DNA of 64,000 nucleotides. It comes from Mobula hypostoma. Lineage: Eukaryota. The position numbers and the translations under genes are program-made. A model generated the notes under the pieces. The model made no database searches. It was not told the origin of the DNA and saw nothing but the letters and a program-made list of their open reading frames with translations. The stretch covers positions 208,444,001 to 208,508,000 of the forward strand of contig NC_086098.1 in assembly GCF_963921235.1 (NCBI RefSeq), given 5' to 3'. This document shows, in pieces, positions 8,500 to 39,083 of this stretch (the stretch's first letter is position 1; each line of letters starts with the position of its first letter).

Positions 8500-11400
8500 G
8501 ACAGCTTTATGGAGTGGGTGTCAGAGAAGTGGATGACAGAGTACAGGGGGAGTCAGAGTAGGAGGGCTTTGGCTCAACGGAGCTCTGACAATAATGGATC
8601 AAGGAGGGGTAAGTTACTTCCTGTTCTTAACAAATATGTCTGTGAGGCCGGTATTCTGTACCAGGTGTCGGATGTGGGATGTCCAGGAGACTCCCAGCCT
8701 CCCAGATAGCCACATCTGTGCCAGGTGCATCGAGCTGCAGCTCCTTAGGGACAGTGTTAGGGAACAGGCAATGCAGCTCGATGACCTTCATCTGGTCAGG
8801 GAAAGTGAAGAAGTGATAGAGGGGAGCTATAGGCAAGTAGTCACACCGGGGCCTTGGGAGACAGACAAGTGGGTAACAATCAGAAGAGGGAAGGGGAAGA
8901 GTCAGGTACTAGAGAGTAACTCTGTGGCTATCCACCTCAACCATAAGTACTCCTGTTTGAGTACTGTTTGGGGCGGGGGACGGACGGTTGACCTGGGAGA
9001 AGCAACAGCGGTCGTGCCTCTGGCATAGAGTCCGGCCCTGTGGCTCAGAAGGGTAGGGAAAGGAAGAGGAAGAGGATGGCAGCAGTGATACGGGACTCCA
9101 TAGTTAGGGGGTCAGACATGCGATTCTGTGGACGCAGGAAAGAAACACAGATGGTAGTTTGCCTCCCAGGTGCCAGGGTCTGGGATGCTTCTGATCGCAT
9201 CCACGATGTCCTGAAGTAGGAAGGTGAACAGCCAGAGGTCCTGGTACATATTGGTACCAATGACATAGGTAGGAAAATGGAGGAGGTCCTGAAAACAGAC
9301 TATAGGGAGTTAGGAAAGAAGCTGAGAAGCAGGACTGCAAAGGTAGTAATATCGGGATTACCGCCTGTGCCACACGACAGTGAATATAGGAATAGAGTGA
9401 GGTGGAGGATCTATGTGTGGCTGAGGGATTGGAGCAGGGGACAGGGGTTCTGGATCATTGGGACCTATTTTTGGGCAAGTGTGACCTGTACAAAAAGGTC
9501 AGGTTGCACTTGAATCGGAAGGGGGACCAATATCCAAGCAGGGAGGTTTGCTAAAGCTATTGGGGAGAGTTTAAACAATAACAGGGTTGCCATGGTGGGA
9601 GATTTTAATTTCCCCAATATTGACTGGCATCTCTCTAAAGCAAGGGGTTTTGATGGGGTGGTGTTTATTAGGTGTATTCAGGAAGATCTCCTGACACAAT
9701 ATGTGGATAAGCCTACAAGAGGAGAGGCTGTACTTGATCTGGTATTGAGAAATTAACCTGGTCAGGTGTCAGGTCTCAGTGGGAGAGCATGTTGGAGATA
9801 GTAATCACAATTCTATCTCCTTTACGATTGCATTAGAAAGGGATAGGAACAGACAAGTTAGGAAAGTGTTTAATTGGAGTGGAGGGAAATATGAAGCTAT
9901 CAGGCAGTTACTTGGAAGCATAAATTGGGAACAGATATTCTCAGGGAAGTGCAAGGTAGAAATGTGGCAAACGTTCAGGGGATATTTGTGTGACATTCTG
10001 CATAGGTACGTTCCAATGAGACAGGGAAAGGATGGTAGGAAACAGGAACCATGGTGTACAAAGGCTGTTGAAAATCCAGTCAAGAAGAAAAGAAAACCTT
10101 ACGAAAGGTTCAAAAAAAAACTAGGTAATGATAGAGATCAAGAAAATTATAAGGCTAGCAGGAAGGAGCTTAAGAATGAAATTAAGAGAGCCAGAAGGGG
10201 ACATGAGAAGGCCTTGGCAAGCAGGATTAAGGAAAACCCCAAAGCATTCTACAAGAATGTGAAGAGCAAGAGGATAAGATAAGTGTGTATGGAGATAGCA
10301 GAGGCACTTAATGAATACTTTGCTTCAGTGTTCACCACAGAAAAGGACCTTGGCTATTGTAGGGATAACACAGTGGACTGAAAAGCTTCAGCATTCAGAC
10401 ATTAAGAAAGAGGATATGCTGGAGCTTTTGGAAAGCATCAAGTTGGATAAGTCGCTGGGACTGGATGAGAAAAACTCCAAGCTACTGCGGGAGGCGAGGG
10501 AGATTACTGAGCCTCTGGCAATTATCTTTCTATGATCAATGGGGACGGAAGAGGTTCTGGAGGATTATCGGGTTGAAGACGTTGTTCCCGTATTCAAGAT
10601 AGGGAGTAGAGATAGCCCAGGAAATTATAGACCAGTGAGTCTTACTTCAGTGGTTGGTAAGTTGATGGAGAAGATCATGAGAGGCAGGATCTATGAACAT
10701 TCGGAGAGGCATAATATGATCAGGAATAGTCAGCATGGCTTTGTCAAAGGCAGGCCTTACGAGCCTGACTGAATTTTTTGAGGATGTGACTAAACACATT
10801 GATGAAGGTAGAGCAGTAGATGTAGTGTACAGTGGCATCGGAAAGTTTGGGCATCCCAGTCAAAATTTCTGTTACTGTGAATAGTTAAGTGAGTAGAAGA
10901 TGAACTGATCTCCAAAAGTCAAAGATGAAATATTCTTTTCAACATTTTAAGATTAGTATATTATTTTTGTTTTGTACAATTTTGTTGTACAAAAAGGAAA
11001 GGCGCACCATGCAAAAGTTTGGGCACCCCAAGAGATTTGAGCTCTCAGATAACTTTTACCAAGGTCTCAGACCTTAATTAGCTTCTTAGGGCTATGGCTT
11101 GTTCACAATCATCATTAGGAAAGCCCAGGTGATGCAAATTTCAAAGCTTTCTAAATACCCTGACTCCTCAAACCTTGTCCCAACAATCAGCAGCCATGGG
11201 CTCCTCTAAGAAGCTGCCTAGCACTCTGAAATTAAAATAAATGATGCCCACAAAGCAAAAGACTAAGAAGATAGCAAAGCGTTTTCAGGTAGCCATTTTC
11301 TCAGTTCATAATGTAATTAAGAAATGGCAGTTAACAGGAATGGTGGAGGTCAAGTTGAGGTCTGCAAGACCAAGAAAACTTTCCAAGAGAACTGCCCGTA

Positions 11401-18660: not shown

Positions 18661-18704
18661 GCCTTCTTTACAAGCAAGCTGTCCTATTGTATCTTCATCG
18701 AAAG

Positions 18705-19272
18705 ATGTATGGGGTGTATGGGGTGTCAGGGAGGGGTAGCACCTCTGGTGGGGGAACATGTCGCGTCCTTCTCAGGGCAGTTAGTCCACCTTTGGTCCCC
18801 ACCTGGCACTCAGCTCTCACCTGTGACTCCCCGTAGCTGTTTGCATGCGACAGCGGCCACACCCCGGGCAATGGCTTCGACAAGCCGGCTAAATCAGGTG
18901 AGGGTAGCCGACGGATCTCAAACCCTCGGTGAGATAGGGAGTTGTCTATCCCAGCATGTGAAGACAGACTCCGGCGGATTGAGCGGACGAGACCAATGGA
19001 AAGTCCAATGGTCAAGAAGGCGGTCTCTGCAAGCGTCGTGGAACGTGCAGAGCAGGACAAGACACAGAAGACGTCCTGGTCATCCACTGCGCCTAGTCCC
19101 ATCTCCAGCCATCTAGACTCTGTCTTGCCACTGGATCCAGATGGGAATTGGGAAGAGAGAGTGAGGCTGACGCTGCGCAACTCTCCCTCACTTGAATCCA
19201 AATCACGCGCTAGTCTCGACACCATCATAATGGTGTCCAGGTCATCATTGACGTCAATGATGGACGAACAAC
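18705..19272 (+). mobile_element. Non-coding, bipartite RTE-like non-autonomous retroelement with a 5' HDV-like ribozyme fold
   Basis: 10-bp TSD TCATCGAAAG (18695-18704 / 19273-19282). GC-rich structured body, no credible protein, 3' hairpins and ACAAC tail. Family assignment is inferred. Confidence 0.7.
18711..18904 (+). ncRNA. Putative HDV-like self-cleaving ribozyme
   Basis: P1 GGGGTGT(18711-17)/ACACCCC(18859-65); P2 CTCTCACCTG(18814-23)/CAGGTGAGGG(18895-904); L3 TCCCCGT; P1.1 CC/GG; P4 TGGCTT/AAGCCG; J4/2 GCTAA with candidate catalytic C18889. P3 has one mismatch. Confidence 0.7.
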
Positions 19273-19454
19273 TCATCGAAAGTAATCTTTTCCCCAAAAT
19301 ACATACATTATTCATGAAATGTACATTAAATATTTGTCATTATCTTCATTCACTATACCAAGCAATTCAATACATTCCTTTGCAATATATCAATGTCACT
19401 AATACTTTCTCCTTAGGCACTGCATTAGTGAAACATTTGATTGCCTTTTACACC

Positions 19455-34340: not shown

Positions 34341-36006
34341 GTAGAAACCATAGAAACTACAGCACAGAAACAGGCCTTTTGGCCCTACTTGGCTGTGCCG
34401 AACCATTTTCTGCCTAGTCCCACTGACCTGCACACGGACCATATCCCTCCATACACCTCCCATCCATGTATCTGTCCAATTTATTCTTAAATGTTAAAAA
34501 AGAACCCGCATTTACCACCTCGTCTGGCAGCTCATTCCATACTCCCACCACTCTCTGTGTGAAGAAGCCCCCCCTAATGTTCCCTTTAAACTTTTCTCCC
34601 CTCACCCTAAACCCATGTCCTCTGGTTTTTTTGTCCCCTTGCCTCAGTGGAAAAAGCCTGCTCGCATTCACTCTATCTATACCCATCATAATTTTATATA
34701 CCTCTATCAAATCTCCCCTCATTCTTCTATGCTCTAGGGAATAAAGTCCCAACCTATTCAACCTTTCTCTGTAACTGAGTTTCTCAAGTCCCGGCAACAT
34801 CCTTGTAAACCTTCTCTGCACTCTTTCAACCTTATTTATATCCTTCCTGTAATTTGGTGACCAAAACTGAACACAATACTCCAGATTCGGCCTCACCAAT
34901 GCCTTATACAACCTCATCATAACATTCCAGCTCTTATACTCAATACTTTGATTAATAAAGGCCAATGTACCAAAAGCTCTCTTTACGACCCTATCTACCT
35001 GTGACGCCACTTTTAGGGAATTTTGTATCTGTATTCCCAGATCCCTCTGTTCCACTGCACTCCTCAGTGCCTTACCATTAACCCTGTATGTTCTACGTTG
35101 GTTTGTCCTTCCAACGTGCAATACCTCACACTTGTCAGTATTAATCTCCATCTGCCATTTTTTCAGCCCATTTTTCCAGCTGGTCCAAGTCCCTCTGCAG
35201 GCTCTGAAAACCTTCCTCACTGTCTACTACACCTCCAATCTTTGTATCATCAGCAAACTTGCTGATCCAATTTACCACATTATCATCCAGATCATTGATA
35301 TAGATAACAAATAACAATGGACCCAGCACTGATCCCTGTGGCACACCACTAGTCACAGGCCTCCACTCAGAGAAGCAATTCTCTATCACCACTCTCTGGC
35401 TTCTTCCATCGAGCCAATGTCTAATCCAATTTACCACCTCTCCATGTATACCTAGCTACTGAATTTTCCTAACTAACCTCCCATGCGGGACCTTGTCAAA
35501 GGCCTTACTGAAGTCCATGTAGACAATATCCACTGCCTTCCCTTCATCCACTTTCCTGGTAACCTCCTCGAAAAACTCCAATAGATTGGTCAAACATGAC
35601 CTACCACGCACAAAGCCATGTTGACTCTCCCTAATAAGTCCCAGTCTATCCAAATGCTTGTAGATTCTGTCTCTTAGTACTCCCTCCAATAACTTACCTA
35701 CTACCGACGTTAAACTTACTGGCCTATAATTTCCCGGATTACTTTTCGATCCTTTTTTAAACAACAGAACAACTTGAGCCACTCTCCAATCCTCCGGCAC
35801 CTCACCTGTAGACAGCGACATTTTAAATATTTCTGCCAGGGCCCCTGCAATTTCAACACTAGTCTCTTTCAAGGTCCGAGGGAACACCCTGTCAGGTCCA
35901 AGGGAATTTATCCACTTTAATTTTCCTCAAGACAGCAAGGACCTCCTCCTTTTCGATCTGTACAGTTTCTATGATCTCACTACTTGTTTCCCTTAATTCC
36001 ATAGAC
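34341..36006 (-). mobile_element. Young 5'-truncated CR1 LINE (RT domain nearly intact)
   Basis: ORFs 35456-35887, 35141-35437 and 34414-35220 give GNYRPVSLTSVVGK, YMDFSKAFDKVPH, SGVPQGSVLGP, FADDTK, LYKALVRPNLEY with only about one stop and one frameshift. Confidence 0.95.
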
Positions 36007-38829: not shown

Positions 38830-38921
38830 TTTGGGTGTAGTCCTGTGTGAATGGCACAATTTAAGCACAAGTTTCTTTGGGTGTGGTACTGTGTGAATGG
38901 CACAATTTAAACACAAGCTTG
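38830..38921 (+). repeat. 46-bp tandem duplication
   Basis: TTTGGGTGTAGTCCTGTGTGAATGGCACAATTTAAGCACAAGTTTC followed by TTTGGGTGTGGTACTGTGTGAATGGCACAATTTAAACACAAGCTTG. Confidence 0.85.
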
Positions 38922-39083
38922 TTTATAAATTGTTTTTAAATTAGATTTGGTTTTCATCTTGCCTTTCATCCAAAGAATTTCTCGAACCAAAGCCCTCATC
39001 AATAGCTGTGCGATCTGTACCTCTCAATAGCTACCAAGTTGTTAAGCAAATGATTGTATATAATATACTCTTTTTTTTTACAG

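Follow-up and report, generated by a model that had tools for sequence, protein, structure and literature searches.

We estimate a probability of about 0.8 that positions 18711–18904 form an HDV-like ribozyme at the head of an internally deleted, 562-nt derivative of an APE+RT LINE of cartilaginous fishes. The element occupies 18711–19272 on the plus strand of the window, as we call the whole 64,000-nt stretch of DNA that was analyzed, and a self-search of the window identified it as the sole copy of its family there. In the sequences compared, the fold is encoded, conserved and backed by covariation, and the copies have their 5′ ends at the predicted cut site. The features of the insertion and of the proposed ribozyme, all on the plus strand, are as follows.

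18695–18704, plus strand: left target-site duplication (TSD) TCATCGAAAG, a 10-mer identical to 19273–19282
18705–18710, plus strand: probable filler ATGTAT, 6 nt between the left TSD and G18711
18711–18717, plus strand: P1 5′ strand GGGGUGU, pairing with ACACCCC at 18859–18865; predicted cleavage 5′ of G18711
18718–18813, plus strand: structured J1/2 domain of 96 nt, a long irregular hairpin in RNAalifold and single-sequence folds
18814–18823, plus strand: P2 5′ strand CUCUCACCUG, pairing with CAGGUGAGGG at 18895–18904
18825–18827, plus strand: P3 5′ strand GAC (family consensus GGC), pairing with GCC at 18856–18858
18828–18834, plus strand: L3 core UCCCCGU, in which C18829 and C18830 are the P1.1 partners
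18836–18854, plus strand: extra hairpin GCUGU/ACAGC of 19 nt, between L3 and the P3 3′ strand
18856–18858, plus strand: P3 3′ strand GCC
18859–18865, plus strand: P1 3′ strand ACACCCC
18866–18867, plus strand: P1.1 3′ strand GG, opposite C18829 and C18830 and followed by GCAA(Y)
18872–18887, plus strand: P4 hairpin UGGCUU-CGAC-AAGCCG, with the stem 18872–18877 paired to 18882–18887; consensus C at 18872
18888–18894, plus strand: J4/2 GCUAAAU (consensus GCUAAAC), with the candidate general acid C18889
18895–18904, plus strand: P2 3′ strand CAGGUGAGGG
18905–19215, plus strand: body from the LINE 5′ untranslated region, 73–77% identical to LINE 5′ ends
19213–19262, plus strand: two 3′ hairpins, one formed by GACACCAU...AUGGUGUC and the other a perfect palindrome, CAUCAUUGAC/GUCAAUGAUG, seen as inverted self-matches
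19263–19272, plus strand: 3′ end of the element, GACGAACAAC, lacking poly(A); the loose ends of family copies follow 19272
19273–19282, plus strand: right TSD TCATCGAAAG, the identical 10-mer

The fold in the window copy and in its family

Every helix named in the first-pass annotation was found at its coordinates in a scripted pairing check of the sequence, and the strands of P1, P2, P3, P1.1 and P4 follow one another in the canonical order of the nested double pseudoknot. The J1/2 domain is closed by a stem of 10 bp, two of them G·U, between 18721–18730 and 18802–18811, and the 5′ arm of this hairpin is a second copy of GGGGUGU. P3 of the window copy contains a mismatch, A18826×C18857, which had been guessed to be copy-specific. 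The family bears out this guess: G is read at 18826 in approximately 99% of the family depth, in each of three organisms, and in all 11 of the other fetched copies, nine of which have GGC. Because G18826 is the family consensus, the A-C mismatch is private to the window copy. The consensus change A18826G restores P3 to GGC/GCC, and a second one, T18872C, converts the first P4 pair from U·G to C-G. With a mismatch in the middle of a 3-bp P3, the window copy itself is probably a crippled, dead insertion.

Further copies were collected by comparing the sense and antisense frames of the element with predicted proteins and then fetching the contigs that encode them. A conserved 26-nt pattern gave four further loci in the metagenome collection and no match in genome_contigs or viral_contigs; an earlier pattern, made up of L3 and its hairpin, had no match in the metagenome collection. 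The resulting alignment, A4, holds 12 distinct copies, the window copy and 11 others, and pairs were counted in it with a custom script. Of the pair cells proposed for the 12 copies, 89% hold a standard pair, as compared with 34–50% when the 3′ partners are slid by 1–3 columns. Double changes were seen at 10 pairs and in 15 cells (shuffle means 4.9 and 6.2), values that were reached in 3 and 0 of 1000 shuffles, respectively. Because the 12 sequences are related, the shuffle figures overstate the significance, and a better case is made by the slid controls and by the fact that the changes arose independently. The compensatory changes are listed here.

P1 pair 2: G-C to U-A, in L010
P1 pair 5: U-A to G-C, in L011 and L013
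P4 pair 2: G-C to C-G, in L006, L007, L009 and L012
L3 hairpin pair 1: G-C to A-U, in L002
L3 hairpin pair 2: C-G to U-A, in L007
J1/2 closing stem, 18726–18806: U·G to G·U, C-G and U-A

Covariation across copies had been put forward as the check on P1, P2 and P4. It was observed for P1 and P4, both of which show compensatory changes, and not for P2, which is invariant in the undecayed copies. P2, P3 and P1.1 thus show conservation and no covariation in the 12 copies; their mismatches fall in visibly decayed copies (L007, L008 and L003), and both C-G pairs of P1.1 form in 9 of 12. Two elaborations that the annotation had described also held up in the alignment. The long J1/2, claimed to be structured, folds into a hairpin with a covarying closing stem, and the hairpin inserted in L3 is present in 12/12 copies, with two compensatory changes in its stem.

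The strands of the core are the best-conserved part of the 5′ 500 nt (0.89–0.94, versus 0.75–0.80 elsewhere), and J4/2 is the most conserved segment of all (0.94). U18828, C18829, G18833 and the loop CAUG (18844–18847) are invariant in A4, and the family pattern of L3 is UCC-NN-G-W. Ten of the 12 copies retain the candidate catalytic C18889; it is replaced by U in L003 and deleted in the decayed L008. A G is present at +1, and its partner at 18865 is C in 12/12 copies, with no G·U wobble.

Two departures from the common pattern were observed among the copies. In L009, L010, L011 and L013, CAGGU and GAGGG of the P2 3′ strand are separated by a one-base bulge (A, U or C); it is absent from most other copies, including the window copy, and two of its four carriers are intact LINEs. 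The other is a diverged copy, L003 125–400, found in identical form in three metagenome samples, one from JGI and two from ENA (it is the same as L004 and L005). In this copy the catalytic C is changed to U, P4 is broken and 3–4 nt are inserted after P1; probably it is dead, and the three samples share one common organism from which it comes.

The element family is very abundant. Contigs of at least eight organisms contain words sampled from the element, and thousands of contigs per run match it when the contigs of three organisms are aligned to it; the raw-read DNA run X21 contributed no aligned sequence. The family boundaries, at 18710 and 19272, are evident from loose ends whose flanks are unrelated. 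Loose-end consensus sequences after 18865–18867 revealed a second subfamily, in which CCGCUUCGACAGGCGG in P4 corresponds to the change of the second pair from G-C to C-G. The prediction that the 5′ ends of copies cluster at G18711 agreed with the data of four runs, in which the family loose ends peak at 18709–18712 and the flanks are AT-rich and unrelated. The counts at these four positions were 30, 67, 61 and 30 in run X1 and 35, 101, 64 and 36 in run X6, and the flank agreement at the 5′ loose ends was approximately 0.4. The contigs of the RNA-like run X18 include copies with upstream flanks, an observation that proves nothing either way.

A probable short derivative of a LINE

Three of the fetched LINEs, each approximately 4 kb long, have intact ORFs with Exo_endo_phos and RVT_1 domains: L010 (1109 aa), L009 (1092 aa) and L012 (1096 aa). 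L002 is a decayed LINE among the fetched copies. All three intact LINEs carry the same ribozyme-like head, including the L3 hairpin, and the head is common to L010 and L012, the proteins of which are 52% identical. Positions 5–510 of the element align to the 5′ ends of L002, L009 and L010 with 73–77% identity. At the other extremity, L010 ends in ...GGACGAACA as the element does, and L009 and L012 end nearly so. The remainder of the 57-nt tail of the element aligns weakly to the ends of the fetched LINEs, among which the true partner subfamily is not represented. The shared LINE head and the GGACGAACA terminus indicate that the element is probably a short, internally deleted LINE derivative, non-coding and SIDE-like, of an APE+RT LINE.

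The LINEs have a single ORF of approximately 1,100 aa, a 3′ UTR of approximately 40 nt and no poly(A), an architecture that looks RTE-like, and the protein atlas places the LINE protein in generic APE+RT clusters only. The 64-kb window contains no partner LINE of the element. RT fragments of other LINE families are found in it at 35288–35854 (minus strand) and at 10500–10754, and these are 27–31% identical to the ORF of L010.

The annotation had called the element non-coding. In the window copy, a frame of 132 aa (18718–19116, plus strand) starts from an AUG at +8 of the RNA that cleavage is predicted to release, and an antisense frame spans the entire element (18707–19270, minus strand, 188 aa; the full ORF, of 206 aa, extends over 18695–19315). 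Neither frame has a match in Pfam. The frame that matches the 132-aa ORF is interrupted by many stops in L010, L009 and L012, the three intact LINEs; to judge from this comparison, it is not a conserved ORF. The non-coding assignment is thus upheld, and we rejected an element-encoded protein for the same two reasons, namely the Pfam result for both frames and the breaks in the plus-strand frame. Relatives of the antisense frame appear as 52 matches among protein representatives, and the best named matches come from Mobula birostris and M. hypostoma, where the entries read "uncharacterized protein"; the host lineage would accordingly be a ray or a near relative. Most likely these entries are an annotation artefact, that is, spurious gene models on the repeat.

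The spacing of 6 nt that had been claimed between the left TSD and the cut site, 18710/18711, is taken up by ATGTAT. The homology of the other copies begins at G18711, and their sequences upstream of it are unlike one another; ATGTAT is probably junction filler or a non-templated addition and not an inherited sequence. The 5′ junctions of R2 carry similar additions, and ATGTAT in the window copy is consistent with the junction variation described there (PMC3774820). The 3′ terminus of the element, ...GGACGAACAAC, has no poly(A) and is preceded by the two hairpins; the terminal motif GACGAACAAC is probably the recognition site of the LINE reverse transcriptase.

The register of P1 and alternative readings

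The 5′ end holds two copies of the unit (UGUAU)GGGG, so that the assignment of P1 to the first GGGGUGU had to be weighed against its assignment to the second (18720–18726). In the latter case the cut would lie between 18719 and 18720, and the first repeat would be junction filler. The relaxed descriptor used below allows both registers, and the first GGGGUGU is absent from L006, L009 and L013, which have the second repeat only. The starts of L007 and L008 are irregular and G-rich. By analogy with R2 (PMC3774820), we read the missing first repeat and the irregular starts as 5′ truncation or junction variation. The pairing itself speaks for the first repeat: the P1 changes in L010 and L011 match that copy alone and are compensatory with it, whereas the second copy covaries with 18802–18811. 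It follows that the first repeat is P1 and that the second closes J1/2, as the annotation had assigned them. The ends of the copies point the same way, in that 7/12 begin at the first repeat and the best-supported loose ends are those at 18709–18712, with no peak listed at 18719/20 in the same four runs. Given the covariation and the positions of the loose ends, we rejected a P1 on the second repeat, which we consider very unlikely.

With P1 on the first repeat, the question is whether the fold might be a chance match in a G+C-rich repeat, or a conserved structure that does not cut. A relaxed HDV descriptor found 5 loci in the window as compared with a mean of 5.65 in dinucleotide shuffles, and the nested MFE had a z of 0.09 against shuffles, a score that is uninformative for a pseudoknot. 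Both figures are what a chance match would give. Because the relaxed descriptor did no better than shuffles, the bare HDV topology is no evidence, and the case for a non-chance origin of the predicted fold rests on comparative data, namely family conservation and covariation. A strict descriptor (P2 of at least 10 bp, P4 of at least 6 bp and L3 U-CC-NN-G), which was chosen post hoc, returned this site alone in the window and nothing in 60 shuffles. The conservation of the family in at least eight organisms, the covariation in the 12 fetched copies and the repair of the sole mismatch by the consensus effectively refute a chance match, to which we give next to no weight. Another alternative is that the head is a structured 5′ leader conserved for a different role, such as that of an internal promoter, of an RNP assembly platform or of an IRES-like element; transcription would then start at G18711, and the likeness to HDV would be coincidental. 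A fixed transcription start would likewise give a defined 5′ end at G1, the cut-site pair is G1-C in place of G·U, and Rfam models of the HDV type gave no match at the gathering score or at E values up to 10 (window and five loci), a miss that the two large insertions may explain. Moreover, in Pr77 of L1Tc the same 77 nt are both promoter and ribozyme (PMC3383444), so that the head of the ray element could have a promoter role as well. Such a leader would not be expected, however, to have all five HDV helices in the correct order, or to keep those single-stranded positions that are important in HDV (the U...CC...G of L3, the GG and the C of J4/2), and P1, for which a promoter would have no use, covaries. 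We therefore regard a leader that does not cut as unlikely and favor the ribozyme.

A further site found by the relaxed descriptor, at 38830–38925 of the window, consists of two adjacent units of approximately 50 bp (TTTGGGTGT.GT.CTGTGTGAATGGCACAATTTAA.CACAAG). It looks like a short tandem duplication and not like a ribozyme.

Proposed mechanism and relation to known elements

In the mechanism that we propose, the element would be transcribed within a longer host or read-through transcript, in which the head would fold into P1, the structured J1/2, P2, P3, L3 with its extra hairpin, P1.1 and P4. The cut 5′ of G18711 would then be made by C18889 of J4/2 and a Mg2+ ion held at the U18828/G18833 pair of L3; a role of the L3 U/G pair in Mg2+ binding has been described (PMC13635239). 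The cleavage would release an RNA that has the first base of the element as its own first base. The LINE protein would recognize the 3′ hairpins and the GGACGAACA tail and copy the RNA by target-primed reverse transcription, and the insertion would leave a 10-bp TSD and a few filler bases at the 5′ junction. We infer catalysis, co-transcription, the lack of a promoter belonging to the element and recognition of the tail by the reverse transcriptase, and, by analogy, the dependence of the predicted cleavage on Mg2+ and C18889.

The loop of the L3 hairpin contains an invariant CAUG, which lies inside the self-complementary GCAUGC; in the intact LINE L010 the bases on both sides of it are changed, and the resulting ACAUGU remains self-complementary. 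One could envision the hairpin as a kissing-loop or protein-binding module, which might couple the RNA to the LINE RNA or RNP for mobilization in trans or gate the folding of the ribozyme. We think that this is rather unlikely. A simpler reading is that the G-C pair (A-U in L010) extends the stem around a CAUG tetraloop.

HDV-like ribozyme heads are known from insect and trypanosome retrotransposons. Ribozyme-headed LINEs with non-autonomous derivatives are established (PMC6765202, PMC3774820, PMC3414825), and ribozyme-headed, internally deleted elements, as well as filler bases at 5′ junctions, have been described (PMC3414825, PMC3383444, PMC3774820). The ribozymes of R2, RTE, Baggins and L1Tc, like the predicted one of the ray element, have an extreme 5′ position, and their predicted cut is at the first base of the element (PMC3774820, PMC6765202). 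Common to this type and the ray element are, in addition, a large and variable J1/2, filler bases at the 5′ junctions, and the U-CC-..-G of L3, the GG of P1.1 and the C of J4/2. The ray element differs in that it resides in a cartilaginous fish, has a hairpin between L3 and the P3 3′ strand, closes J1/2 with a duplicate of the P1 strand and has a G-C pair, not G·U, at the cut site. The R2 SIDEs of Drosophila and NARTc of Trypanosoma cruzi are of the same design as the one proposed here, with the ribozyme-bearing 5′ end of a LINE joined to its 3′ end; these elements are non-autonomous, are mobilized in trans and have variable 5′ junctions (PMC3414825, PMC3383444). Whereas R2 SIDEs have been termed rare examples (PMC3414825), the ray family is present at very high copy number in several species. 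Its insertions are dispersed and not rDNA-specific, again in contrast to R2 SIDEs.

HDV itself has similar strand motifs. L3 is UCCUCGC in HDV and UCCCCGU here, and GGGCAAC after P1 and GGCUAA before P2 are close to HDV. Both HDV and CPEB3 have a G·U wobble at the cut-site base of P1. In contrast to these two, the ray element has a 96-nt insert in J1/2, a 19-nt hairpin in L3, a G1-C pair and a short P4, and its J4/2 is approximately 2 nt longer than that of HDV. The literature searched described no elasmobranch family of such elements and no helix inserted in L3.

The core that defines HDV-like ribozymes is very compact, and what is found here is a conserved, covarying hairpin grafted into L3 beside the putative metal-binding U/G pair. 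Activity of the RNA would mean that a helix can be accommodated at this point of the catalytic loop, and the hairpin would also explain why motif and covariance-model searches have missed the family. With this family, LINEs that are processed by a ribozyme, and the internally deleted elements that parasitize them, would be known from a cartilaginous fish as well, and here the short derivative has reached a very high copy number.
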